Shown: piece after piece, positions 2,426-47,660 of the stretch | Layout of the letters: each line of letters begins with the position of its first letter | Position numbering within the stretch: the first letter of the stretch is position 1 | Sequence record: KY555144.1 | Strand: one strand, 5' to 3' | DNA length: 64,000 nucleotides | Notes under the pieces: generated by a model | Databases searched by the model: none | What the model saw: the letters and a program-made list of their open reading frames with translations, nothing else | Told to the model about the DNA's origin: nothing | Position numbers and translations under genes: made by a program

Positions 2426-2887
2426 TCAGGGCCTCGACTTGATCAGCTTCTTCTTGCGCCGGGCCGGGCGCGGCGCGAGCGGGAAGCCGTGATCCGCGTA
2501 CACGGGTTCGGGCGGCGGGGCAGGCAGGTCCGTCGGACGCTCCAGGCTAAAGGCGTCCGCGTCGAGGTCGTAGATCGACACCCGGTCGCTGTAGCCGTAG
2601 CGGTTGTCGTGGTAGGTGATCCCGACATCGCCCAGGCTGGAGACCATGATCACCCGACAGGCCTTGCCCTTGTAGCGGCCGTAGAGCTTCGGCATGAAGC
2701 CGGCCTCCTCGATCGCCAGGGTCTCGGTGGCGTTGCCGGCGTTCAGCGCCAGGAAGCCCCGCACGATGGCCGGCAGCTTGTAGTCGCAGATCGCGCGGCT
2801 GTTGCTGACTTCGTAGGGCATGCCGATCTTGCCCTCCATCAGGGCGCCCAGGACCTCGGCGTCGCTCAGGGTTTCAGTCTCGGCCAT
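2426..2887 (-). CDS. hypothetical protein
   Basis: start trimmed to ATG 2887 (MAETETLS), overlapping the upstream gene end. Confidence 0.75.
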   Translation of the reverse strand: MAETETLSDAEVLGALMEGKIGMPYEVSNSRAICDYKLPAIVRGFLALNAGNATETLAIEEAGFMPKLYGRYKGKACRVIMVSSLGDVGITYHDNRYGYSDRVSIYDLDADAFSLERPTDLPAPPPEPVYADHGFPLAPRPARRKKKLIKSRP

Positions 2888-3143
2888 AGGTGATCCTATA
2901 CGGGAGCCCGCCGACGCAGATTTTCCCGCGTCGGCCGTCGGCGGTGGTGAAGCGGAAGCCCTGGCGGCTCTTGGCGCCGGCGCAGGACCACCATGCGCGG
3001 TGAAAGCTGACGACCTCGGCGCCGGTGTCACGCTCGACCAGATGTCGAGCGTGACGCCCCTCCCAGGTGTAGGCCCAGACCCCGATGGCGAAGAAGACCA
3101 GAGTCAGGGAGCCATAGACGGCCCCTTTGACATAGTCCTCCAT
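2874..3143 (-). CDS. small membrane protein
   Basis: N-terminal hydrophobic helix GAVYGSLTLVFFAIGVWAY. Confidence 0.75.
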   Translation of the reverse strand: MEDYVKGAVYGSLTLVFFAIGVWAYTWEGRHARHLVERDTGAEVVSFHRAWWSCAGAKSRQGFRFTTADGRRGKICVGGLPYRITYGRD

Positions 3144-3520
3144 CAGGCCGCCACGAGCCCGGTGATCACGTCGGTGACGATGCGACGCTTCTCGGCCGGC
3201 ATGCCCGCCAGCGCCAGGATCGTCTTGGCGCCGATCTCGGCGACGGCGGTCTCGACGTCGGCCCGGCCGTCGGTCAGGAACGCCGGATCGTCGACCGGAG
3301 GATAGAAGTGCCCGATGTCCTTCTTCAGGAACTGGGCCGCCTCATAGAGCTTCGAGGACGAGATGCGGTTGTGCCCGCGCTCGTACTTCTGGACCTGCTG
3401 GAAGGTCACGCCGATCGCCTCGGCGAGTTGGCCTTGCGAGAAGCCGGCCGTCTTGCGGGTGTCGCGCAGCTTGCGTCCCACATAGACGTCGACGGGGTGC
3501 GGGGTCTTGTCGTCAGCCAT
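3143..3520 (-). CDS. tgrL: XRE-family HTH transcription factor (Caulobacter Rtr/Cdx-type; likely TgrL homolog)
   Basis: PHPVDVYVGRKLR...SQGQLAEAIGVTFQQVQKYERGHNRIS is the alphaproteobacterial XRE signature; start trimmed to ATG 3520; symbol rests on recalled phiCbK literature and was not aligned. Confidence 0.85.
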   Translation of the reverse strand: MADDKTPHPVDVYVGRKLRDTRKTAGFSQGQLAEAIGVTFQQVQKYERGHNRISSSKLYEAAQFLKKDIGHFYPPVDDPAFLTDGRADVETAVAEIGAKTILALAGMPAEKRRIVTDVITGLVAA

Positions 3521-4499
3521 GAGCGGCTTCCTCCTTCTGCTTCTTGGACCGCAGGTCGCGGCGGTGCTTAAAGGCCGCACGCAGGGCCTGGGTGGTGTCG
3601 TCGTGCATGCCCAGGTCCGCCCCATCGGGCGCGACCACGCTGTTTCGGAGACCGAACCGATAGCCCTCGGCCGTCAGTTCATAGACCGCCTGCTCCTCGT
3701 GCATCTGGGCGAGGTGGCGATAATATTCGGCCAGCGCCAGTTCGTAGTCGCCCAGGAAGAGGCGCGCGTTGCGCTCGACGCCGGCGACCTCGGCGCGGAA
3801 GGTCAGCAGGAACCGCCCAGGCCCGACATGCGTCAGCTTGTAGCCGTGTTCGGCCAGCACCTCGTCGACGGTCTTGGTGACCGTGTAGATGTGGAAGGTG
3901 TAGACGGCTTCGATGTGGGTGTCGTCGTAGAGATACTCGGACCGGTTTTGATGCTCGCCGATGTAGGGACCCCACTTGTGGTAGCGCCAGCCGCCGGACG
4001 CGGGCTGGTGCTCACGCCGGACTTCCACCATCGAGATGAAATAGGGCGTGTCCGGATCGTCGATCAGGTCGGGGATGCAGGCGAGAAGCTGCTCGGGGCT
4101 GTCGCAGACGCCGTAGCTTTCGACCAGATAGGGGATGCGCCTATAGCCCTCGGGGACCGGCGGAACCTCGTCCAGGTACTCGGTGTCGAGCACCTCGATC
4201 TTGTACTTGTCGTGGAGCAGGTTGATCCGCGCCCAGCGGCGGTCGCCGTCGGCCTTGATCCAGGCCCGGACCGCAGCGCTGCGCTCCTCCTCGGTCTGGC
4301 CGCGTTCGTGGGGCGGACCCCACTTGCTGTCGCGGTCCTCGATCTTTTCGACGATCTCGTACTCGGGATTCCAGGAGCCCATCGAGTAGACGCCCTGGTG
4401 GAGGCGAATGGGCTTGCGGGCGCGGTTGTTCATTTCCGCGATCATCTTGGCGATCGGGTCGACTTCCGAAGCCGGGCGTAGGGTGATGTCGTAGAGCAT
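3513..4499 (-). CDS. conserved hypothetical phage protein
   Basis: start trimmed to ATG 4499; GGWRYHKWGPYIG motif. Confidence 0.8.
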   Translation of the reverse strand: MLYDITLRPASEVDPIAKMIAEMNNRARKPIRLHQGVYSMGSWNPEYEIVEKIEDRDSKWGPPHERGQTEEERSAAVRAWIKADGDRRWARINLLHDKYKIEVLDTEYLDEVPPVPEGYRRIPYLVESYGVCDSPEQLLACIPDLIDDPDTPYFISMVEVRREHQPASGGWRYHKWGPYIGEHQNRSEYLYDDTHIEAVYTFHIYTVTKTVDEVLAEHGYKLTHVGPGRFLLTFRAEVAGVERNARLFLGDYELALAEYYRHLAQMHEEQAVYELTAEGYRFGLRNSVVAPDGADLGMHDDTTQALRAAFKHRRDLRSKKQKEEAAHG

Positions 4500-4917: not shown

Positions 4918-7041
4918 TCAGACGTCCAGAGCGAAGGCCGGCGGGGAGACGTCCGGCTTCTGAATGATGAATCCCCGATCCAAGAGGGGTGGGAAGACCT
5001 GCTTGAGCACGCCAGCCGCGACTCCAGCTTCCCCAGCGATTTCGGCGAACGTGAAGGCCTCGCGCTGGCCGGCGCTGGCGACGAACAGATCGTTGAGCGC
5101 CAGGATGACTGCGCCCGCCGGGCTGATCTCGTAAGCCATGTCGAAATTCGGGTCTTCCGACAGCCGTAGCAGGCCCTCGGCCTCCAGGTTCGCAATGAGC
5201 GCCTTGAGTTGGTCGACCTTGACCGCGCCGAGATGGGTTTGGATTTCCCAGGGCGCCGCCGGCTCCTCGGCGCGGACGGCTTGCAGCGTCGCGATCAAGG
5301 CGATCGCCGGCATAGCCCGCACGATCATTTCGTCGCCGTCCGTCAGGTCCGGGGCGTTGACCAGCAGATCGTTGATCACCGCGTCACCGTGGGTCTCGAC
5401 ATAGGTCCGCAGCCGCTTGAGGGCGACCAGGAAGTCGTCCTTGGTGATCGGCTCGATGCGGAAGGTCAGGAGCGGGTCGGTCGGAATCTCCGAGAAGTAG
5501 GCCCGACCCCGGTGGCTCCAGCCCTCGACCACATGCAGGAAGAGATCGATCGGCATGGCGACGGCGCCAAAGCCCAGTCGCGCATCGTCCGTCGCCTCCT
5601 CGACCTGCGCCAGGGCGTTATCGATCGCTTCGAGCGTGAAGCCCCCGACAAGGCCGTTTTCCGCCGCGTCCAGCACGTTGGCCGCTTCTTCGGTGCCGAG
5701 CCCCTCGACGACCATTTCCGAGGCCTCCTGAGCCGTTTCCTGCGGCAGGGCGTCGGCGAGCTTGCTCATCGCCTCGGCGACGCCGCTCGTGTCGAGTTCC
5801 AGCTTCAGGGCCAGCTTCTCAGGACGCGCCGAGTAGGGCACGCCCTGGATCACCACGGCGCCCAGGTCGCCGACGACGCGCTTGGTCACTTCCAGATAGG
5901 CGTAGCGCGAGGCGGCGTTGAGCAGCGACAGCCGCTCGAAGACGATCTGCTGCTCCTGCTCGCGCGACATGATGCCCGTCTCCAGAATGAACAGCGGCTC
6001 GGAGCCGTCCAGCGGCGGCTTGGCCTCGCCGTCGTCTTCCGGATGATCCTCGTCGAACTCGGCGCCGCTGATCGGCTCGCTCTCCGGCGGGGTGAAGCGG
6101 ATGCCCGGCTCGCGGGGCGGTTCGGCGGGAGTGGCGTCGTCAAGGGGCATGTCGGTCCTTTGAGGCTTGGAGGTGATGAAGAGCGTGGTGAGATCGACGT
6201 CCCAGACCCCAGACCCATCGGTGAAGAGCGCCATGAAGGTCCCCAGGCGCGCGTCCCAGCGGACGGTCTGGATCACGCCGTTGATCTCGCCATAGACGGC
6301 GGTCGCCCCGGCGAGCATGGCGTTCAGGGTCTCCACATGGGCGTAGCACTCGCCGAGCGTCGCGGGGCGCACGGCGTGGAACGGGTATTGCTGATAGGCG
6401 CCCGGCGGCGAGACGAGGCGGACATTGACGTAGAGCGGCCCCAGATGGGTGTGGGCGTCGCGCAGGAAGCCGACCACGGTCTCCCCGTCGTTCTGGGTCG
6501 CCACCACAGGCATGCCGGCGCAGTTGGCGGTCAGGACCGCCGGATAGTCCTGGGGATAGGCCACGGCGTAAAGGTGGAGATGATCACCCCGGCGCTGGGC
6601 CTTCCAGTCGGCGACACACCAAGCCGCCACGCGCGTGGCCCCGAACTCCGGCGTCTCCTCGATCAAGACGCCGCCGTCCGGAAGGTCCGCTTGCCCAATA
6701 TAAGGAACGACCTCGCTATGGCTGACGCTCCAGGCGGGCTTGGGAAATTGCGGGGTGATCATGAGCTTCTCGGTGAAGGTGAGATTGATGGCGTCGGCGT
6801 AGTGGACATACGGGCCGACCGGGGTGGTCCATGGCGGATCACCCTTGCGGATGTCCGACAGCGGCACCGCGACGTGCCTGCCGTTGGGCTGGACGATGTC
6901 GGCCAGGATGCGCGGCGGCTGGTGCATCAGGGTCACGACGTGCCCCTCGCCCGCCTCGAAGGTGCGACTCTTGGGCCACCAGACCTTGGACCCGGTCCAG
7001 TGGATCGACTGGATGACAAGGTCCTGTTCGGTCCCGATCAT
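4918..7041 (-). CDS. 707-aa hypothetical protein with C-terminal winged-helix-like segments
   Basis: long ORF; LKALIANLEAEGLL..YEISPAG and FTFAEIAGEAG...LLDRGFI resemble wHTH. Confidence 0.8.
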   Translation of the reverse strand: MIGTEQDLVIQSIHWTGSKVWWPKSRTFEAGEGHVVTLMHQPPRILADIVQPNGRHVAVPLSDIRKGDPPWTTPVGPYVHYADAINLTFTEKLMITPQFPKPAWSVSHSEVVPYIGQADLPDGGVLIEETPEFGATRVAAWCVADWKAQRRGDHLHLYAVAYPQDYPAVLTANCAGMPVVATQNDGETVVGFLRDAHTHLGPLYVNVRLVSPPGAYQQYPFHAVRPATLGECYAHVETLNAMLAGATAVYGEINGVIQTVRWDARLGTFMALFTDGSGVWDVDLTTLFITSKPQRTDMPLDDATPAEPPREPGIRFTPPESEPISGAEFDEDHPEDDGEAKPPLDGSEPLFILETGIMSREQEQQIVFERLSLLNAASRYAYLEVTKRVVGDLGAVVIQGVPYSARPEKLALKLELDTSGVAEAMSKLADALPQETAQEASEMVVEGLGTEEAANVLDAAENGLVGGFTLEAIDNALAQVEEATDDARLGFGAVAMPIDLFLHVVEGWSHRGRAYFSEIPTDPLLTFRIEPITKDDFLVALKRLRTYVETHGDAVINDLLVNAPDLTDGDEMIVRAMPAIALIATLQAVRAEEPAAPWEIQTHLGAVKVDQLKALIANLEAEGLLRLSEDPNFDMAYEISPAGAVILALNDLFVASAGQREAFTFAEIAGEAGVAAGVLKQVFPPLLDRGFIIQKPDVSPPAFALDV

Positions 7042-7463: not shown

Positions 7464-7705
7464 GGCTCGACCTTCCGGACAGTGTAGGATAATTCGTCGT
7501 GGACGCGACCGTCGAAACTAGCCTCGTAGCCGGGGCCGAGTTCGGCCAGGATGCGCGCCTCGATCTCGGCGAAGTCGATTTTCGCCATCGCCTGTTCGGC
7601 CGCCCGCATCTGCTGGAGGAAGCCGTCCTTGATCTGGCGCCCCGCCTCGGTGCGGATCGGGATGTTCTGGATCGGCGGCTCGGATTTCGACAGACGCTCG
7701 CCCAT
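7460..7705 (-). CDS. hypothetical protein
   Basis: overlap-coupled to gcrA. Confidence 0.7.
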   Translation of the reverse strand: MGERLSKSEPPIQNIPIRTEAGRQIKDGFLQQMRAAEQAMAKIDFAEIEARILAELGPGYEASFDGRVHDELSYTVRKVEP

Positions 7706-8253
7706 CAGGCCCTCCGGCGATAGACCCGCACCGGGCGGGTGGGGAGGCGTTTCTCAGGCGGCTTGTAGGCGACCAGGGCATGGCTGATGCAGTAGACGCC
7801 CGCCTCGGCGCGGCATCCGCAATGGCCAAAGTCCGGCGAGTTCGGGTCGCCATAGGGCCAGCGGCACATTCCGCGCTTGAGTTCGGCCGTCGCGAACAGC
7901 CGCGCCGGGCGCGGCGGGATGACCGCCGTCCCTTCAGGGACCAGGGCGAGCTTAGGCTTGGCCGGCGGAGCGGGCTTTTCGACCTTCTTGGGCTTACGCG
8001 CCGTGGCCTTCTTGACCTTGCGGACCTGGATGCCCAGGCCGCGCGTCTTCTTGCGGCGGGCGGTCGGAGGCGGAACCTTCTCGCCCAGTTCGCCGGCGGC
8101 CTTCAGTCGGTCGGCCTTGCCGCAGACGGCGCTCTTGGTGCGCGGCACGCTCAGGCGCTGACCGATCTCCTTGGTCCCGACCGGCTCCGCCCAGAGCTTC
8201 TTGAGCAGGGCGATGTCCTCGTCCGGCCAGTCGGAATTCCGCTTCTTCACCAC
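7705..8253 (-). CDS. gcrA: GcrA cell-cycle regulator homolog
   Basis: N-terminal WPDEDIALLKKLW..EIGQRL..TKSAVCGKADRL and C-terminal CRWPYGDP..FGHCG...YCISHALVAY. Confidence 0.92.
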   Translation of the reverse strand: MVKKRNSDWPDEDIALLKKLWAEPVGTKEIGQRLSVPRTKSAVCGKADRLKAAGELGEKVPPPTARRKKTRGLGIQVRKVKKATARKPKKVEKPAPPAKPKLALVPEGTAVIPPRPARLFATAELKRGMCRWPYGDPNSPDFGHCGCRAEAGVYCISHALVAYKPPEKRLPTRPVRVYRRRA

Positions 8254-10498: not shown

Positions 10499-10753
10499 AT
10501 GCTGACCAAGGACGAGATCACCTTCGCGGGCCTGATCAAGGCCATGGAGGACGCCCGACGCACCGCCAAGGCGGCGGGCGATCTCGTCAGCACGGCCGAG
10601 ATCGCCCGCTGGTTCAAGGAACACGCGCCGATCATCCGGGAGGTCCGCGACAAGGCCGAGGCTGACGAATTCGACGCTGGCGCGAGAGTGTTGACAACCT
10701 CTGAGGAAGGGGCTAAAGACACCCTCGACGACAGCGAAAGGAGCCTGCCTTGA
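10499..10753 (+). CDS. hypothetical protein
   Basis: operon packing; 3' end overlaps a promoter cassette. Confidence 0.7.
   Translation: MLTKDEITFAGLIKAMEDARRTAKAAGDLVSTAEIARWFKEHAPIIREVRDKAEADEFDAGARVLTTSEEGAKDTLDDSERSLP
10688..10744 (+). promoter_or_regulatory. sigma70-type promoter with leader
   Basis: GTGTTGACAACC..GGCTAAAG..CCTCGACGACAGCGAAAGGAG. Confidence 0.8.
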
Positions 10754-11769
10754 CCGACTTCCCGATCATCCGCGCCGCCATCTCGCCCCGCCGGGCCGCC
10801 CAGTTCGACGCCGCCCTGGCGAACGTGAAGGCCTTCACCGAGGAAGGCGTCCTGATCAAGGCCGAGTGGAACGACATCAAGGACACGTTCAGCCGCGCGA
10901 TCGCCGAGACCTGGGACGCGTTCAAGGACAAGGAATACTACCCCCGCGCCCGCCAGGGCGAGCACGAGAACGTTGGCAAGCTCTACTGGGAGCTTCTGAG
11001 CCCCTACCCCCATGTGCTGGCCGGCTATCTGAAGAAGGTCCAGAACGCCAAGAACATCGAGCCGGCGATCCTGCGCGATTTCCCGATCGCCTTCTTCACC
11101 GAGGCCCTGCCGCTCAACGACATGCTGGTCGCCCTGAAGCCGCTGATCGGCAAGCGCGCGCCCAAGAAGACCAAGGTCCAGATCGAGCGCGAGGGCAAGG
11201 AGCGGACCTGTCAGGTCTGCGGTCGCGGCATCCTGGCCGAGAACGGCCGGATCGCCCACCACGGCTATCAGCGCCCCGGCATGGGCTATCAGACCCCCTC
11301 GTGCAGCGGCGCCCTGGAACTGCCCTTCGAGATCAGCCGCGACGCCCTGGGCGTCGACATCGAGAACCTGAAGGCCTACCGCGCCCGCCGGCAGACCTAT
11401 CGCTCCGACGTCAACCTGGAACTGGTCAGCCTGCCGGTCAAGTATCAGGTCTCCGAGCAGGACCCGCGCCGCGCGCCGGGCTTCAAGCATGTGGTCGACA
11501 AGATGATCCACGTCACCCGCGCCGACTGGGACGCCCAGAAGGCCGAAATCCCCGAGGCCTTCGCCGGCAAGTACGGGCCGCGCAAGCCCAACTACACCTA
11601 CGAGCCCTTCACCTTCGACGCCCTGAAGACCCAGGTCCTGGGCATGGTCGACGGCGAGATCGAGTTCATCACCGGCACGATCCGGGCGCAGCAGAAGCGC
11701 TATGACGACTGGAAGCAGACGATGGAGTTCGTCGACGGCCAGTACCGGACGCTGGAGGTCGCGGCTTGA
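10750..11769 (+). CDS. hypothetical protein with putative Zn-binding motif
   Basis: TTG start after AAGGAG; CQVCGR...HHGY...SCSG. Confidence 0.85.
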   Translation: MTDFPIIRAAISPRRAAQFDAALANVKAFTEEGVLIKAEWNDIKDTFSRAIAETWDAFKDKEYYPRARQGEHENVGKLYWELLSPYPHVLAGYLKKVQNAKNIEPAILRDFPIAFFTEALPLNDMLVALKPLIGKRAPKKTKVQIEREGKERTCQVCGRGILAENGRIAHHGYQRPGMGYQTPSCSGALELPFEISRDALGVDIENLKAYRARRQTYRSDVNLELVSLPVKYQVSEQDPRRAPGFKHVVDKMIHVTRADWDAQKAEIPEAFAGKYGPRKPNYTYEPFTFDALKTQVLGMVDGEIEFITGTIRAQQKRYDDWKQTMEFVDGQYRTLEVAA

Positions 11770-13308: not shown

Positions 13309-13803
13309 ATGACCCGCAGCACCGCCGACATCATCGCCCGCATCAAGGCCCTGGAGGAAGACCCCACCGACTTCTTCGGCTTCCAGGCCAATGATCTGGT
13401 CTGCTACCTCCCGTTCGAGGCCGCCAAGCCCTGGCTGAATGAAAACGCCACGCCCGAGGTCTGGACGCCCAACGTCAACACCCCCGAGGCGATCAAGCAG
13501 GTCATCCTCGACTACATGGAGTTCGCCTGGGACAAGGCCAACAACCGGCGCGGTCTGTCGGCTGGGCGCTCGCTAGACCACATGAAGGCGTGGCTCTGGA
13601 TGCTGGACGAGGACGCGGCCTGGGTCGCGGCCTTGAAGCTCTCCGACTACACCCACTACGGCAAGCCGCAGCTTCGCGCGATCTGCAAGCGCTTCGGCTG
13701 GGACTGGACGCAGTGGGACGACGGGCGGTGGTCCAGCCGCGAGTTTGGCGATGATCACGCGCCCGAGGAAGTCGAGGAAGTTGGGCTCATCGAACCCGTC
13801 TGA
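13309..13803 (+). CDS. conserved hypothetical phage protein
   Basis: ATG 13309; YMEFAWDKANNRRGLSAGRSLDH...HYGKPQL. Confidence 0.8.
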   Translation: MTRSTADIIARIKALEEDPTDFFGFQANDLVCYLPFEAAKPWLNENATPEVWTPNVNTPEAIKQVILDYMEFAWDKANNRRGLSAGRSLDHMKAWLWMLDEDAAWVAALKLSDYTHYGKPQLRAICKRFGWDWTQWDDGRWSSREFGDDHAPEEVEEVGLIEPV

Positions 13804-13821
13804 GTCTTTCCTGGCGTGAAA

Positions 13822-13877
13822 GTGTTGACAGCCTGAAGGGACTCCTCTACACCCACGCTCGACGACAACGAGAGGAG
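13822..13877 (+). promoter_or_regulatory. sigma70-type promoter with leader
   Basis: GTGTTGACAG..CTCTACAC..CTCGACGACAACGAGAGGAG; GANTC sites at 13802 and 13840. Confidence 0.8.
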
Positions 13878-13882
13878 TTCCC

Positions 13883-15652
13883 ATGGCCGAGACCATGACC
13901 CTGAGTTTCCGGATCGAAGGCGCCGCCCTGGTGGAGCGGGCGCGCGATCGTGTCATCGAAGGTAACTGGGAGCACGGCCTGCGCATCCTGGTCGAGGGCC
14001 TGCACGGCATGTCCTACGAACTCGCGATCGACATCCTGCTCGGCAAGCACACCCTGGGCGGCTGGTCCTCGGACCCCGAAGGCGTCTATCTCACCGACCA
14101 GGACCCGGAGGACGAGACTTTCAAGCGTTACAAGAAAACCCTCGACTACCAGTTCGCCGGCGTCTTCAAGCTGGAGGATGGCCGGATCATGCGTCCCTAC
14201 GCCGTGGTCGACAGCTTCTCCAAGATCGACTTCGACTCCAGGGTCCGCTTCCTGCGGCTGGCCCAGGGCTCGGACCCGGTGTTCTCGCGCCCCAAGCGCT
14301 ATCACGACACCCGCGCCGAGATCAACGGCGAGGAGATCGACTGGGCCTATCGCGCCCTGCACTACGCCGACGAGCCGACCCAGGACATCGTCCGTCTGGT
14401 CCGTATGGAGGGCTTCCATCCCACGATCCGAGCGGCGGTCCTGTTCAAGGAAGTCCGCGACTATCCCAAGCTCCTACTTCCGAAGGTCGAGACCGACGCC
14501 CAGAAGGCCGTCGATGTGGCGATCAAGGCCCAGCGCGGCCTCTCCAAGCGCGGGCACGTCTACGAGTACGGCGCTGGTCAGGACTTCGACAAGGAGCACT
14601 ACAAGACCACCATGGGGATCGATCAGGTCCCCACCGCCTGGACCGTGCGCAACCCGAAATACGTCGAGCCGAGCGTCGAGATCGCCCTGGCCGAGGCCAA
14701 CAAGGTCTCCGCCGTCAAGGCGATCGAAGCCGCTGGCGGTTCGATGGATCATGCCGGCGCCATGAACCGGATGGTCAAGGACGAGATGGACGGTGGCATG
14801 GACATCAGCACGGCCGTCGCCATGACCCAGGCCAAGATGGCGCTGCTGGGCGGCATGGCCGAGGACCCCGAGCAGCGCCTGCGGGCGATCAACGACGCCT
14901 ACGCCGCCAAGTACGAGAAGGCCGAGGGCCGCAGCGTCGAGGAGTACCGCAAGGCCATCATCGCCCAAGCTGGCGATGACTTCTTCGATCTCGCGTACAC
15001 GGATGTGGACGGCAAGGAGGTCGTCCTGAAGGTCCCGACCGCGCCGTTCGAGCAATGGGCTCTGTGGCGCACCGCCGGCGCCCACCTCGCCAAGCCCTGG
15101 AAGCGGGTGACCTACACCGGCTTCAAGACGTTCGGCGATGATCCCTATCACACCGACTGGGTGCTGGGCGCGGGGCTCAACCCCGAGGACTGGCCGATCA
15201 TCGAGGCCGACAACCCGCCGCTCCACAAGGCCGCCTGGGAAAAGCGCTTCCGGCTGGCCGAGGAGAAGCTGGGCGGCAACATGCGCGTCCTGCTCGGCAA
15301 GGGTTACGTGACCGGCAAGATCGTGATGCTCAAGCCGGGCGAGGCCCTGTCTCCGGGCGAGATCGGCGTGATCCGCAACGCCGGCCCTGACTATGTCCAG
15401 GCCGCCCAGAGCGCCATCGAGCACAACTCCGCCTTGATCTGCGAGAACGGCGGCAGCGTCGCCCACCTCGTGGTCGAGTATCTGGACAAGCCCCTGCGTC
15501 TGGCGCGGATCGAGAACGCCCGCAAGATTTTCAAGGACGGCATGACCGTCTACCTCGACTTCGACAAGTCCACGCGCGAGATCGGCAAGGGAAGCCTTGG
15601 CCCGAGCCCGGCGGACCTTGGACTCGACACGCAATGGGAGATTTTCGAATGA
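13883..15652 (+). CDS. 589-aa protein with C-terminal PEP-utilising-enzyme mobile (phosphohistidine swivel) domain
   Basis: GYVTGKIV..GEIGVIRNAGPDY..ALICENGGSVAHLVV..IFKDGMTVYLD resembles the PEP-utiliser mobile domain; His528 retained. Confidence 0.8.
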   Translation: MAETMTLSFRIEGAALVERARDRVIEGNWEHGLRILVEGLHGMSYELAIDILLGKHTLGGWSSDPEGVYLTDQDPEDETFKRYKKTLDYQFAGVFKLEDGRIMRPYAVVDSFSKIDFDSRVRFLRLAQGSDPVFSRPKRYHDTRAEINGEEIDWAYRALHYADEPTQDIVRLVRMEGFHPTIRAAVLFKEVRDYPKLLLPKVETDAQKAVDVAIKAQRGLSKRGHVYEYGAGQDFDKEHYKTTMGIDQVPTAWTVRNPKYVEPSVEIALAEANKVSAVKAIEAAGGSMDHAGAMNRMVKDEMDGGMDISTAVAMTQAKMALLGGMAEDPEQRLRAINDAYAAKYEKAEGRSVEEYRKAIIAQAGDDFFDLAYTDVDGKEVVLKVPTAPFEQWALWRTAGAHLAKPWKRVTYTGFKTFGDDPYHTDWVLGAGLNPEDWPIIEADNPPLHKAAWEKRFRLAEEKLGGNMRVLLGKGYVTGKIVMLKPGEALSPGEIGVIRNAGPDYVQAAQSAIEHNSALICENGGSVAHLVVEYLDKPLRLARIENARKIFKDGMTVYLDFDKSTREIGKGSLGPSPADLGLDTQWEIFE

Positions 15653-15945
15653 GCGAGAAGTGGCAATCGGTTGAGGAAGCCGCCAATAACCTCTCCGGCT
15701 GGAACGTGCGCTCGGCCCAGATGGCGGTCGCCGGCGGGACCCTCTACCGGACGATCGTCTCGCGCGACAGCCAAGGCGCGGCGCCGGCGGTGACCACGAC
15801 CTTCGTCCCGGACGCCCCGCCGCAGTTCACCGTCCAGGTCACCGACGAGGACCTCCGCAGTCTCGCCGAGTGCAAGGACGTCGCCAGGGCGCGCAGTCTG
15901 TTCCGGGGCATCCTGAAGGCTCACGGCCTGGAGATCATCGCCTGA
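15649..15945 (+). CDS. hypothetical protein
   Basis: ATGA overlap; VAGGTLYR..TFVP motif shared with 8261..8440. Confidence 0.75.
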   Translation: MSEKWQSVEEAANNLSGWNVRSAQMAVAGGTLYRTIVSRDSQGAAPAVTTTFVPDAPPQFTVQVTDEDLRSLAECKDVARARSLFRGILKAHGLEIIA

Positions 15946-25182: not shown

Positions 25183-25878
25183 ATGCTCTATGTGTTCGGG
25201 GATATCCACGGCCGGCTCGACCTCCTGGAGAAGGCGCGGCACGAAATCCGTGTACGCGGCGACTGCACCCAGATGATCTTCCTCGGCGACTATGTCGATC
25301 GCGGCCCCGACAGCAAGGGCGTCGTCGAGGCGGTGATGGCGCTCCAGGACCAGGGCGAGATCGCCCTGATGGGCAACCATGAGGAAATGATGCTGACCGC
25401 CTGTCAGATCAAGTCCTACAACGCCATGTCCAAACTCTGGGTGTCGAACGGCGGCAAGCAGACCCTGAAGTCCTACGGGGCCGGCGACAATGCCTGGAAC
25501 GCCAAATGGGACCTGATCCCCCAGGAGCATGTCGACTGGATGGCGCGCCTCAAGCCGATCCACGAGACGCCGGGACGGGTGTTCGTCCACGCGGGCCTCG
25601 CGCCGGGCGTGTCGATCAAAATGCAGGAGGAGGAACACCTGCTCTGGATCAGGGACAAGTTCCTGAACGCGCCGGCCGACAAGTTCGAGAAGCATATCGT
25701 CCACGGCCACACCCACACCCATGCGCGCAAGAAGATCGAAGAGCCCGAGCTTCTCGCCCACCGGACCAACCTCGACACCGGGGCCTTCTACACGGGCGTC
25801 CTGGCCGTCGGGGTGTTCGATCCGGACGGCTATGGCGGACCCGAGGAGGTGCTGTTGATCCGCGAGGACGACGCATGA
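25183..25878 (+). CDS. calcineurin-like metallophosphoesterase (PPP / lambda-phosphatase type)
   Basis: GDIHG, GDYVDRG, GNHE, HAG, HGHT and DTGA motifs; start trimmed to ATG 25183. Confidence 0.92.
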   Translation: MLYVFGDIHGRLDLLEKARHEIRVRGDCTQMIFLGDYVDRGPDSKGVVEAVMALQDQGEIALMGNHEEMMLTACQIKSYNAMSKLWVSNGGKQTLKSYGAGDNAWNAKWDLIPQEHVDWMARLKPIHETPGRVFVHAGLAPGVSIKMQEEEHLLWIRDKFLNAPADKFEKHIVHGHTHTHARKKIEEPELLAHRTNLDTGAFYTGVLAVGVFDPDGYGGPEEVLLIREDDA

Positions 25879-29172: not shown

Positions 29173-31203
29173 ATGGATTTCCACGTCTTTAAGACGGCCG
29201 TCGCCAAGCAGTGGGCCGCGATGACCAAGGATGACGCGACCCTGTTCCGCGTCGACGTCGACAAGGACCTCCTGTGGTCGACCTATCTGGGGGCGTTCCC
29301 GGCCGGAACCGACCCGATCTTCCGCGAGCGCTCCGAGCACGACTGCTCGTGCTGCCGCAACTTCATCCGCAACGCCGGCGACGCCGTGGCGGTGGTGAAC
29401 GGTCAGATCGTGACGATCTGGGATGGCAAGATCGAGGGCGAGCCGGCCTACCAGCAGGTCGCCGCCACCCTGGCGGCCCTGGTCCGCTCGCGCCCGGTGC
29501 GCGACATCTTCCTGCACGACCAGAAGACCATCGGGACCGACAAGAACGTCGAGACCATGCTGGGCGGCGACGTCACCTGGAACCACTTCTTCGTCAATGT
29601 CCCCTCGCGCTTCGTCAAGAAGGGCAAGGACATCCCGACCGCGCTCCACATCCCGCGCACCGCGCAGGAGACGCTCCTGCGCGCCGTGACCGAGATCACC
29701 GACGAGGCGATCGACACGGTGCTGGACCTGATCGCCCAGAACGCGCTCTATCGCGGGGCCGAACACAAGTCGGCGGTGGTGGCGTTCCAGAAGGCCAAGA
29801 AGACCTTCGAGGGCCTGTCGGCCGCCGACAAGGCGCTGAAGGCCTGGGTCAACGTCACCAATGGGGAAATCTGGGGCTCGGTCTCGGGCATCCGGAGCAC
29901 GGTGATCGGCTCGCTGCTGGTCGACCTGTCGGCTGACGTCGACCTGGAGGACGCGGTCAAGAAGTTCGAGGCCAAGGTCGCGCCGCACAACTACAAGCGC
30001 ACGACCGCCCTGGTGACCAAGAAGCAGATCGAAAACGCCAAGAAGACGATCTCCGACCTCGGCCTGACCTCGGCCCTGGAACGGCGCTACGCCGTCCTCA
30101 AGGACGTGTCGATCAACGACGTGCTGTTCGCCGACCGCGACGCCAAGTCGGTGATGAACGACGTCTTCGACGATCTGGCCGCCGACGTCGCCGAGAAGAC
30201 CAAGTCCTACGACAAGATCGAGGAGGTCTCGATCGACAAGTTCCTGTCCGACATTCTCCCGAGGGTGTCGAGCGTCGAGGCCCTGGTCGAGAACCGCCTG
30301 ACGAGCAATTTCGTCAGCCTGATCGCGCCGGTCGATCCGACCGCCGGCTCCCTCTTCAAGTGGGGGAACAACTTCTCCTGGTCCTATGCCGGGGAGGTGG
30401 CAGACTCGATCAAGGCCCGCGTCAAGGCGGCCGGCGGCAACGTCACCGGCGATCTCTGCTGCCGTCTGGCGTGGTTCAACTATGACGACCTCGACTTCCA
30501 CATGAAGGAACCGGGCGGCAACCTGATCTACTTCCGCCAGAAGTCCTCGCCCTACACGGGCGGGCGCCTCGACGTCGACATGAACGCCGGTGGGGGCCAT
30601 ACCCGCGAGCCGGTCGAGAACATCTTCTACGGCGACCGCCGGACGATGAAGGAAGGCGTCTACGAACTGATGGTCCATCAGTACAGCAAGCGCGAGTCCA
30701 GCAACGTCGGCTTCGAGGTGGAGATCGACTACCTGGGCTCGGTCACCCGCTACGCCTACACCACGGCCCTGCGCCAGGAGCAGGTCGTCAAGGTGGCGCA
30801 GTTCAAGTACAGCCACGCGCGCGGCATCGAGTTCATCTCCTCGCTCCCGGCCTCGTCGGCGAGCAAGGACGTCTGGGGCGTGAAGACCGAGACCTTCCGC
30901 AGGGTCAACGTCATCATGCTCTCGCCCAACCACTGGGAAGGCGAGCCGGGCGTGGGGAACAAGCACTGGTTCTTCATGCTGGACGGAGGCGTCAACGAGG
31001 ACGGCGCCCGTGGCTTCTACAACGAGTTCCTGAAGGATAGCCTCACGCCCCACCGTCGCGTCTTCGAGATGCTGGGGTCCAAGCTGAAGCCCGCGCCGGC
31101 GACTGAACAACTCTCCGGCCTGGGCTTCTCCTCGACCAAGCGCGACGAACTCGTCGTGCGCGTCAAGGGGGCCTTCACGCGTACCCTCAAGATCAAATTC
31201 TAA
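29173..31203 (+). CDS. large conserved phage protein with HDCSCC motif and DUF2135/YfaP-like segment
   Basis: start trimmed to ATG 29173 after AAAGGGG; LAWFNYDDLDFHMKEPGG..LDVDMN..PVENI. Confidence 0.85.
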   Translation: MDFHVFKTAVAKQWAAMTKDDATLFRVDVDKDLLWSTYLGAFPAGTDPIFRERSEHDCSCCRNFIRNAGDAVAVVNGQIVTIWDGKIEGEPAYQQVAATLAALVRSRPVRDIFLHDQKTIGTDKNVETMLGGDVTWNHFFVNVPSRFVKKGKDIPTALHIPRTAQETLLRAVTEITDEAIDTVLDLIAQNALYRGAEHKSAVVAFQKAKKTFEGLSAADKALKAWVNVTNGEIWGSVSGIRSTVIGSLLVDLSADVDLEDAVKKFEAKVAPHNYKRTTALVTKKQIENAKKTISDLGLTSALERRYAVLKDVSINDVLFADRDAKSVMNDVFDDLAADVAEKTKSYDKIEEVSIDKFLSDILPRVSSVEALVENRLTSNFVSLIAPVDPTAGSLFKWGNNFSWSYAGEVADSIKARVKAAGGNVTGDLCCRLAWFNYDDLDFHMKEPGGNLIYFRQKSSPYTGGRLDVDMNAGGGHTREPVENIFYGDRRTMKEGVYELMVHQYSKRESSNVGFEVEIDYLGSVTRYAYTTALRQEQVVKVAQFKYSHARGIEFISSLPASSASKDVWGVKTETFRRVNVIMLSPNHWEGEPGVGNKHWFFMLDGGVNEDGARGFYNEFLKDSLTPHRRVFEMLGSKLKPAPATEQLSGLGFSSTKRDELVVRVKGAFTRTLKIKF

Positions 31204-43845: not shown

Positions 43846-44150
43846 CCCCGCATGAAAAGGCGATGACCAAGTCGGTGATGCGCATCTGCGACGACATCCG
43901 CATGGTCGGCGGCGGGACAGGCGAGGCGACCGCGCTCTGGAAGTTCGTCTACCGCCCGGCGATCGAGGCGGGGCGCGCCGGGCGCTACGCCTTCGTGACG
44001 GCCAAGCGCGACATGCCCTTGCCAATGCGGGCCAGCCGGGGTTATCGTCGCTGCGAGATGGAGGCGGTGGTCGACGTCGGCTATGCGGGGCTGCACCCCG
44101 TGGCCTGGGACGAAACCGGCCGCGTCCTGGAGTATCGGGGTCGGGCGTGA
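43842..44150 (+). CDS. hypothetical protein
   Basis: ATGA overlap (MTPHEKAM). Confidence 0.7.
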   Translation: MTPHEKAMTKSVMRICDDIRMVGGGTGEATALWKFVYRPAIEAGRAGRYAFVTAKRDMPLPMRASRGYRRCEMEAVVDVGYAGLHPVAWDETGRVLEYRGRA

Positions 44151-44767
44151 AGGCCGATTGGCGCGAGACATTGGCGGTCGCTTTTGATCGGCCTCTTCCG
44201 GCTGCGGACGAGGTCAAGGACCCCTACGCCTTCGATCCCACCGCGCCGGCCATCATTCTCGACTTCGCCACCCCGCCCGAGCCACCGCCCGAGAACGAAT
44301 ATCGCTGGCTGGCCCTGGACGCGGCAGGCGAACCGCTGGGGGAATTCTGGACCATCCCGCTGGCGGCCGAGGGGCTTGCCCATATCCTCTATCCAGGGCA
44401 TGCCCAGATCGTGCGAGGCAACACCACCAGCCGCCTGCGAGCCAAGCGCCTGTCGCGCCTCTGCGAGGCCCAGAACTGGCGCTGCTGCTACTGCTACGGG
44501 GTGATGCGCCTGCCGGTCGAGTGCCCGTCCCAGGCGCCGGACATGGCGACCCTGGAGCACCTGCACCGCCAGACCGACGGCGGCGGCGGACGGCTGGACA
44601 ATCTGGTCGCCGCCTGCGCGTCCTGTAACTCCCACCGGGGCGCCTTCACGCCGCTGAAGTGGTGGAAGGTCCGCCAGCGCCTGCTCCCGGTCTGGCCCGC
44701 CTGCACGACGATGACCGAGGCCGCCCGATACAATCTGCGCGGCTATGGTCCGCTGCGGGCCGGCTAG
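44147..44767 (+). CDS. HNH endonuclease
   Basis: CCYC...TLEHL...DNLVAACASCNSHRG. Confidence 0.88.
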   Translation: MKADWRETLAVAFDRPLPAADEVKDPYAFDPTAPAIILDFATPPEPPPENEYRWLALDAAGEPLGEFWTIPLAAEGLAHILYPGHAQIVRGNTTSRLRAKRLSRLCEAQNWRCCYCYGVMRLPVECPSQAPDMATLEHLHRQTDGGGGRLDNLVAACASCNSHRGAFTPLKWWKVRQRLLPVWPACTTMTEAARYNLRGYGPLRAG

Positions 44768-46529: not shown

Positions 46530-47660
46530 ATGCCCCGCTACGAGGTCGTCGACAAATACGTCAACGGCAAGCGCCTGACCCAGGCCAAGTTCCGTCGCCT
46601 GATCGTCGACACGGTCGCCAAGGTCAACGCCCTCTATCCCGACAGCGAAGGCGCGCGCGCCCGGCAGGTGGCCGAAGCGCTCTGCGATCCGTCGTGGCTG
46701 GAAGCCGACAACCTCCAGGTCATCGCCCAGACCCTGGTGAACCTGCGGAGCCAGAAGTTCCTCCACTCGCCGGCGCGCGGGGCCTATGTCGTGAACAAGA
46801 CCCGCACCGACATGGGGACCGACGTGCCCGCCCAGTTCGAGCGGATGTTCCACGACGTCCTGATCGAGCAGGGGGGCTTTGCCCAGACCAAGACCCTGCT
46901 GGCGGCCGTCGCCGTCGAGAAGGGGACCTACAGCGAGCGCGCCGCCCAACGCGTCCTCTCGTCGAGCGAGCTTTGCCAGCCGCACTACAAGGGCTCGATC
47001 TGGGCGCTGCGCAACCTCCCGCCTGAGGAACTCGCCAAAATCCCCATGCTCGGCCGCTGGGTCAAGCTGCGCCTGCTCTACGCCTATCGGATGATCATGA
47101 GCAGCAAGACCCTGGCGGATGTCGACGACATGGCCCAGGCCGAGGCCAACCGTCACTTCAAGCGGGTCGGGAAGCTGTTCCGCCACGTGCTCGACATGAC
47201 CGGCGCGGACCTGATCGACGAGATGGACCACCAGCCCCTCCTCGAAGAGGCTCTCGCCGAAATGCTCGAAAAGCATCCCGACGGGGGCAAGCTGCGGACC
47301 GACGCGGCCGATCCCTACGAGCCCTGGGGTAAGGAATTCGCCCGGCTCAAGGACAAGGGCCGCAGCGACGAGCAGATCGAGGCGGCCCGCCGCCGCGCCG
47401 TCGCCGATCAGATTTTCACCATCTTCGATTGGTTCTGCGACGGCGACCCCGACACCCACATCGTCGCCCCGCTCCAGTTCTACACCGCCTTCGCCGACTG
47501 GGCCGGGCTGGACGCCGCGCAACTCAGCCGGGGGATCATGGAGTGGAACCTCCAGGAAACCGCCTGGATGAAGAACCGCAACGACAAGGCGGCGGCGATC
47601 TGGGAGGCCTTCCCCGAATACGCCGATTTGGCCGGCTCGCGGGAGGAGGAGGTGGCCTGA
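46530..47660 (+). CDS. 376-aa putative multi-HTH DNA-binding protein
   Basis: two wHTH-like segments (ARARQVAEAL..TLVNLRSQKFL..RGAYVV; TKTLLAAV..VLSSSEL..GSIWAL) and TAFADWAGLDAAQLSRG; domain call is inference. Confidence 0.8.
   Translation: MPRYEVVDKYVNGKRLTQAKFRRLIVDTVAKVNALYPDSEGARARQVAEALCDPSWLEADNLQVIAQTLVNLRSQKFLHSPARGAYVVNKTRTDMGTDVPAQFERMFHDVLIEQGGFAQTKTLLAAVAVEKGTYSERAAQRVLSSSELCQPHYKGSIWALRNLPPEELAKIPMLGRWVKLRLLYAYRMIMSSKTLADVDDMAQAEANRHFKRVGKLFRHVLDMTGADLIDEMDHQPLLEEALAEMLEKHPDGGKLRTDAADPYEPWGKEFARLKDKGRSDEQIEAARRRAVADQIFTIFDWFCDGDPDTHIVAPLQFYTAFADWAGLDAAQLSRGIMEWNLQETAWMKNRNDKAAAIWEAFPEYADLAGSREEEVA

Follow-up and report, generated by a model that had tools for sequence, protein, structure and literature searches.

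Locus and gene organisation

The stretch analysed here, which we call the window, comprises 64,000 nucleotides (nt) from the right-hand part of the genome of Caulobacter phage Ccr5 (KY555144.1; Shapirovirus, phiCbK-like; 218 kb), and a position in the window equals the position in the record minus 154,729. We studied the gene gp240 (Ccr5_gp240), a coding sequence (CDS) at 13883..15652 on the plus strand that is labelled "hypothetical protein" in the record and lies within a long rightward arm of small hypothetical genes that extends from gp226 on. An earlier note, made from the sequence alone, had described it as an orphan open reading frame (ORF) of 589 amino acids (aa) that ends in a phosphohistidine swivel domain. 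The ORF is real, and its product is a known type of phosphocarrier domain set in a novel, phage-restricted architecture; the family to which it belongs has already been catalogued and is uncharacterised.

On the basis of alignment occupancy and an AlphaFold model, we divided gp240 into four parts that follow each other on the plus strand: an N-domain (residues 1-230, 13883..14572), a variable helical linker or insert (residues 231-345, 14573..14917), a middle domain (residues 346-465, 14918..15277) and the phosphohistidine swivel or phosphoenolpyruvate (PEP)-utilizers mobile domain (residues 466-567, 15278..15583). The model was computed with AlphaFold2 on a 120-sequence alignment and has a mean predicted local distance difference test score (pLDDT) of 82.7. 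The modelled swivel is contiguous and contains no helical insert, and the protein ends 22 residues beyond it.

The C-terminal domain is a phosphohistidine swivel

As a single sequence, gp240 had no match to PF00391 even at E ≤ 10, remaining below the Pfam gathering score, and phmmer found nothing in the PDB. The only single-sequence Pfam match, DUF7097, was sub-threshold (E=0.034) and was rejected, and a search against NCBIfam returned noise only. The domain was identified with two profiles, A1, built from 16 family sequences, and A2, built from 120 sequences that are 23-65% identical to gp240. Searched against the PDB, A1 matched the swivel domains of rifampin phosphotransferase (RPH; 5fbs/5hv1, 7e-11), PEP synthases and the C-terminal domain of pyruvate kinase. 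With A2, the PEP synthase 2ols scored 1.2e-12 and the RPH structures 5fbs/5hv1/5hv2 scored ~9e-12, and further matches were the PEP synthases 8a8e and 9dae and the pyruvate kinase C-terminal domains 2e28 (6e-11) and 3t05 (0.003). In the alignments of both profiles, His528 of gp240 falls on the catalytic His of the PDB matches.

The earlier note had placed a swivel domain at residues ~470-560 with a retained His528 in the segment ENGGSVAH (residues 521-528), and had suggested a Foldseek comparison of this part and of the N-terminal part. Both the domain and the His are borne out. A Foldseek search with the full gp240 model returned RPH as the best PDB match (E=1e-4, probability 0.99), followed by 2hi6 and other swivelling beta/beta/alpha domains. 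Relatives support the same assignment, in that PF00391 is matched by 11 of the 16 and several others, P0034 and P0056 among them, score above the 23.1-bit gathering cut-off. From the profile and model comparisons together, residues 466-567 are truly homologous to the mobile phosphohistidine domain found in PEP synthase, pyruvate phosphate dikinase (PPDK) and RPH.

The His loop of gp240, E521-N-G-G-S-V-A-H528-L-V-V-E-Y-L534-D535, is encoded at 15443..15487 (plus strand), with the His528 codon at 15464-15466. G523 and H528 are invariant in all 120 family sequences, which reach down to 23% identity with gp240. Judged by its sequence, the family consensus of this loop, IxExGGxLAHLAxVGRE, mirrors the canonical dikinase loop GGxT(S/C)HAA(I/V)(I/V)(A/S)R (PMC12167813). 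The flanking positions are less constant: Thr or Ser occurs at -8 in 47 of the 120 sequences, the Arg ~6 residues after the His in 90 and the Glu in 95, and Ccr5 has Cys520, Leu534 and Asp535 at these positions. Because the Ccr5/phiCbK clade carries Leu534-Asp535 in place of Arg-Glu after the His, gp240 escapes detection by PF00391.

A second conserved centre lies in the middle domain

Among the 120 sequences, only four alignment columns are invariant: the swivel residues G523 and H528, and H423 and D425 of the middle domain. The latter two belong to a motif, K415-x3-D419-D-P-x-H423-(T/S)-D425-W, that in gp240 has T424 and spans 15125..15157 (K415-D425, plus strand); in the same alignment, K415 is conserved in 117/120 and D419 in 119/120 sequences. 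Because a Lys/Asp/His/Asp set is fixed in an otherwise divergent family, we read it as a candidate site, and it looks like an active site or a metal- or phosphate-binding site.

The middle domain, which also holds a conserved PxAPFxxW block and is modelled at pLDDT 80-98, has no match to a known fold, and the same is true of the alpha/beta N-domain (pLDDT mostly >90), whose near-invariant residues are R21, G54, P105, D116, R157 and Y161. The linker between them is expanded in the phiCbK group; alignment occupancy there is 0.25-0.58, and pLDDT is low at residues 235-288. A profile of residues 1-465 had zero matches in the PDB at E ≤ 10, and a separate model of this region (pLDDT 83.6) had no significant Foldseek neighbour, the best having E 0.49 and probability 0.07. 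A Pfam search with 120 N-terminal pieces of family members found no recurrent family, and a region search with residues 1-230 retrieved nothing beyond the four nearest proteins of the phiCbK group. The statement in the earlier note that the N-terminus holds no ATP-grasp or PEP-binding motif is thus correct, by motif and also by fold (Pfam, PDB profile and Foldseek), and the Foldseek comparison of this part gave no match better than E 0.49.

Short relatives indicate which parts of the protein belong together. P0056 (221 aa) and P0156 (235 aa, a complete ORF preceded by an unrelated upstream ORF) consist of the middle and swivel domains only, and P0117 and P0157 have these two domains followed by a different C-terminal extension. 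P0056, P0156 and P0157 all lack the N-domain. We examined whether it is encoded separately just upstream of the short forms, and this is not so. A further locus, L024, had appeared to match only residues ~330-567; it encodes a full-length member of 577 aa instead and was set aside. Because short family members hold just these two domains, we take middle plus swivel as the putative minimal functional module, a proposal drawn from the four proteins P0056, P0156, P0117 and P0157, with the N-domain as a presumed accessory domain for specificity or docking.

The gp240 family is almost exclusively phage-borne

In contrast to its description as an orphan, gp240 has many relatives. It matches PHROG 11532 ("unknown function") with E=0 and 1213 bits, residues 1-589 aligning to profile positions 1-586 of 586. 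When 1.84 billion representatives were searched exhaustively with HMMER, with clusters defined at 50% identity, 732 clusters passed E ≤ 1e-3 and 517 passed E ≤ 1e-10; almost all of the proteins have 430-630 aa. Orthologs with 64-94% identity occur in 26 records of phiCbK-like phages, the phiCbK ortholog being CbK_gp239. Among more distant relatives, identity falls to 37% for the protein of Brevundimonas phage Bajun and to 36% for that of Caulobacter phage Seuss; others are found in ten records of Vibrio phages, where two carry the annotation "PEP-utilizing enzyme". UniRef labels the orthologs of CcrSwift (gp245), BL57 and BL10 as "PEP-utilising enzyme mobile domain-containing protein". The entries of PHROG 11532 and UniRef (CcrSwift gp245, CcrBL10, BL57, Vibrio phage 1.232.O NVP1232O_63 and VP-1) are gp240's own family, and automatic annotation has already flagged the swivel in close homologs. 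In the literature, we found no characterised phage swivel-domain protein.

A motif-based scan of viral contigs found 21 family loci, and in ten cases the contig is 100-580 kb long. A scan of the same kind, over one genome per species for ~185,000 species, found a single family locus, on a 25-kb contig of a metagenome-assembled genome. The family is thus almost exclusively phage-borne. Two homologs are located on ~500-kb contigs, where they are surrounded by closely packed, short genes without annotation, as is typical of jumbo phages. On one 499-kb viral contig (L006/L007), the surroundings of the family member are rich in genes of nucleotide metabolism: a phosphoribosyl-pyrophosphate-synthetase-like gene (653-1582), an R2K-type ATP-grasp gene (2789-3601), a CTP_transf_like nucleotidyltransferase gene (10977-11489) and an adenylate kinase gene (14491-15192).

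We clustered all ORFs within ~6 kb of the gene in 28 loci and found no conserved partner gene. Some recurrence reflected synteny within the phiCbK group. The other recurrent neighbour clusters, which were rejected as pathway partners, were antisense shadows of the gene itself and two core genes of jumbo phages, phrog_2087 and phrog_1383, the second of which is a virion protein.

Transcription unit and upstream elements

The 79-nt gap after gp239 contains a promoter-like element on the plus strand (13825..13852), with a -35 box TTGACA (13825-13830) and a -10-like box CTACAC (13847-13852). It is followed by a conserved leader, CTCGACGACAACGAG, which starts at 13858, and by the Shine-Dalgarno (SD) sequence AGGAG (13873), 5 nt ahead of the ATG; leader and SD together occupy 13858..13877. 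The promoter element is kept in phiCbK, Karma, CcrBL10 and CcrRogue, and cross-phage comparison showed that the leader and SD are invariant in all five phiCbK-like phages compared. The TTGACA promoter pattern is enriched in the window (15 found, 5.9 expected), and the arm holds at least six plus-strand copies of a cassette, at 10691, 13825, 17612, 26471, 31672 and 34272, with a common layout: TTGACA(A/G)C, ~15 nt, a -10-like box and then the CTCGACGACAACGAG leader running into the SD, the leader and SD of gp240 being common to the other copies. Three of them (17612, 31672 and 34272) have an identical 28-mer in common. By this arrangement, the repeated cassette is probably a marker of transcription units in the accessory-gene arm. 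Because the copy ahead of gp240 is one of at least six, we propose that gp240 heads its own transcription unit, gp240-gp241-gp242, read from the standard cassette of the arm. RNA-seq of phiCbK infection exists (PMC10688885).

The earlier note had pointed to a gene-specific promoter cassette and to a GcrA-type site, TGAGTCT, at 13801. The cassette is real and repeated, and TGAGTCT is present, overlapping the stop codon of gp239; the emphasis placed on it was not borne out. Two GANTC sites, GANTC being the methylation site of CcrM, lie on either side of the -35 box (13802-13806 and 13840-13844, within 13802..13844), the first of them overlapping the gp239 stop codon. Because both are lost in CcrBL10 and CcrRogue, we rejected the GcrA-type site as a conserved regulatory feature, and the promoter unit can probably do without the two GANTC sites. 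In the window as a whole, GANTC is ~5-fold depleted (69 sites, 330 ± 18 expected), and YGAKTCK occurs 22 times, with 99 expected. A homolog of the cell-cycle regulator GcrA, gp224c (7705-8253, minus strand), is encoded a few kb upstream of gp240.

Neighbouring genes

Downstream, gp241 (15649..15945, plus strand; 98 aa) starts within the gp240 stop as ATGA and, given this overlap, is probably co-translated with gp240. It has no Pfam match, and its conservation is confined to phiCbK-like phages. Two long antisense ORFs inside gp240 (14474-15634, minus strand, 386 aa; 13847-14419, minus strand, 190 aa) were rejected as genes and classed as shadow ORFs of GC-rich DNA, because their apparent homologs in 18 other loci are all antisense to a gp240 family gene.

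Like gp240, three further genes are conspicuously large among the small genes of the arm: gp221c (4918-7041, minus strand, 706 aa), gp275 (29173-31203, plus strand, 676 aa) and gp312 (46530-47660, plus strand, 376 aa), none of which has a significant Pfam match. The same arm as gp240 also encodes a calcineurin-like metallophosphoesterase, gp265 (25183-25878, plus strand; PF00149, E=1.7e-15), annotated as Ser/Thr protein phosphatase family. An HNH endonuclease domain is present in gp307 (44147-44767, plus strand; PF01844, E=2e-5), a gene otherwise unannotated, and gp218c (3143-3520, minus strand) is a regulator of the Cro/CI (XRE) family; in phiCbK, the early XRE regulator TgrL (CbK_gp216) represses host transcription (PMC10688885). 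The segment 53493-64000 is annotated as part of the phage terminal repeat (record positions 208222-218729), identical to the left end.

Proposed function and alternatives

Enzymes with a swivel His serve central metabolism (PEP synthase, PPDK and Enzyme I of the phosphotransferase system, PTS), antibiotic resistance (RPH) and aromatic catabolism. To our knowledge, the His is loaded via an ATP-grasp domain or a PEP barrel in all of them. The gp240 family keeps the swivel and its His and has everything else replaced by domains without a known fold, and this in several hundred clusters that are enriched in large or jumbo genomes.

In our judgement, there is about an even chance that gp240 is a phage-specific His-swivel phosphotransferase with the middle-domain pocket as its second site, a reading that draws on sequence conservation and on the model. 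His528 would be transiently phosphorylated and would swing on its linker, exchanging the phosphoryl group with a second site as either donor or recipient. The likeliest second site on the same chain would be the pocket of K415, D419, H423 and D425, because these are the most strictly conserved residues apart from G523 and H528 of the swivel loop, and their chemistry would suit a Mg2+/phosphoryl-binding or acid-base site. The N-domain, dispensable in some relatives, may supply recognition of a substrate or partner. Expression from the cassette of the arm would fit an enzyme for host takeover or counter-defence whose target in the infected cell is a small molecule or a macromolecule. More tentatively, and with distinctly less confidence than in the general reading, we suggest that the family comprises self-contained phage-only phosphotransferases that pair the ancient swivel with two domains not seen before and in which K415/D419/H423/D425 form a new phosphoryl donor or acceptor centre, possibly with a relay from His528 to His423, or in which the swivel is loaded by docking on a host dikinase or Enzyme I, and that large phages use them early in infection to phosphorylate a metabolite, signal or protein of the host, which would thereby be neutralised or redirected.

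Several points weigh against such a function. Pfam, PDB profile and fold searches find no ATP-grasp, PEP barrel or P-loop donor domain in gp240; no conserved neighbour in the 28 loci points to a pathway; and literature searches turned up no biochemistry of any family member. In addition, the Ccr5/phiCbK clade, with its Leu534-Asp535 and Cys520, could have altered or lost activity.

This last substitution, the loss of Arg-Glu after the His, also bears on the possibility that the swivel-like domain is a non-catalytic regulatory or docking module by which gp240 would bind an enzyme of the host with no transfer of phosphate. In the pyruvate kinases of Geobacillus and Staphylococcus, the additional C-terminal PEP-utilizer-like domain has been proposed to be regulatory or docking and non-catalytic, and such domains are among the best matches of gp240 (2e28, 6e-11; 3t05, 0.003), which has no donor domain. 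We nevertheless consider a purely non-catalytic role unlikely, given that neither His528 nor G523 varies in any of the 120 sequences, even at 23% identity, that a second invariant His/Asp pair is present and that a few absolutely fixed polar residues in divergent proteins are typical of catalysis. The missing donor domain would be explained as well if gp240 were the swivel-carrying, substrate-binding subunit of a two-component dikinase of the HpeH/CreH/PpsA kind, in which a separate ATP-grasp protein of phage or host loads His528 from ATP. Such two-component dikinases are an established enzyme type (PMC12167813) and have the same architecture, a substrate-side region and then a C-terminal swivel; the gp240 swivel is closest to the C-terminal swivels of the RPH/PRK06241 type, and one jumbo-phage locus has an R2K-type ATP-grasp gene ~5 kb upstream. 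However, residues 1-465 show no fold likeness to the rifampin-binding domain common to HpeH and RPH (best Foldseek E 0.49), no ATP-grasp or PPDK_N domain was found among 19 of the larger genes of the 64-kb window of this 218-kb genome, and no ATP-grasp gene recurs beside the gene in the 28 loci. We rate this explanation as low as the non-catalytic one.

Least probable of all, in our view, is that gp240 acts as a decoy or a sink for phosphate: by docking on Enzyme I-Ntr, HPr/NPr or some other His-phosphorelay protein of the host, it would drain PTS-Ntr signalling towards SpoT/(p)ppGpp and the cell cycle, or rewire it. In broad terms, the swivel shares homology with that of Enzyme I (PMC4844700, PMC12167813), a protein that has no donor domain of its own could plausibly draw on an external phosphodonor, and the phage carries a GcrA homolog and so does interfere with Caulobacter cell-cycle control. 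The family is, however, spread over phages of Vibrio and Brevundimonas and many uncultured large phages, which makes a Caulobacter-specific target unlikely as the ancestral function. Neither profile matched an Enzyme I chain at E ≤ 10, Foldseek matches to the N-terminal domains of Enzyme I and Enzyme I-Ntr reached only E 0.4-3 with probability ≤0.15, and gp240 has neither the helical HPr-binding insert in its swivel nor a PEP barrel; the invariant K/D/H/D cluster favours catalysis over simple titration. Of the two interpretations offered in the earlier note, a PTS-Ntr decoy accordingly found no specific support, whereas a novel phosphotransferase is consistent with the bona fide swivel, the invariant His, the K415/D419/H423/D425 cluster and the lack of any known donor or acceptor domain.

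If gp240 is active as a phosphotransferase, it would represent either a new phosphoryl-donor chemistry or a new viral way to borrow a loading domain from the host, and in both cases a kind of phage enzyme not seen before that acts on the infected cell. The phiCbK/Caulobacter pair would be a tractable system for finding its substrate.

Comparison with known systems

In outline gp240 is like the dikinases. RPH (5fbs, 5hv1; PMC4844700), PigC/HapC and PRK06241-type dikinases likewise have a C-terminal swivel with the His in a GGxxxH loop, and RPH, which is the best structural match of gp240 (Foldseek E=1e-4, probability 0.99) and among its best profile matches (9e-12), has the same order of substrate-side domains followed by the swivel. 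In RPH, this C-terminal swivel transits >40 Å between two sites (PMC4844700). Unlike RPH, gp240 has no ATP-grasp and no rifampin-binding-domain fold, is ~280 residues shorter and belongs to a phage-restricted family; the residue before the His is Ala in gp240, in contrast to Thr, Ser or Cys in canonical loops. PEP synthase and PPDK (2ols, 8a8e, 1vbg) have a homologous mobile His domain, 2ols being the best match at 1.2e-12, and a similar His loop, with the Arg-Glu present in most gp240-family members. Their swivel is central, whereas that of gp240 is C-terminal, and gp240 has neither their ATP-grasp nor their PEP/pyruvate triosephosphate isomerase (TIM) barrel. The regulatory Thr that PEP synthase and PPDK carry two residues before the His is absent from the gp240 family, where position 526 is Leu, Met or Val.

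The two-component phenolic dikinases HpeHI, CreHI and PpsAB have a chain that combines substrate region and swivel without a nucleotide-binding domain and is loaded in trans by an ATP-grasp partner (PMC12167813). HpeH is homologous to the rifampin-binding domain of RPH, whereas residues 1-465 of gp240 are not, as judged by Foldseek. Since it has neither the ATP-grasp nor any of the known substrate domains, gp240 fits no characterised dikinase family. The N-terminal domain of PTS Enzyme I and Enzyme I-Ntr belongs to the same swivelling phosphohistidine superfamily as gp240, which differs from these proteins in having no significant sequence or fold match to them, no HPr-binding helical subdomain and no C-terminal PEP-binding barrel. 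By profile comparison, the gp240 swivel is nearer to the PEP synthase, RPH and pyruvate kinase type than to Enzyme I.

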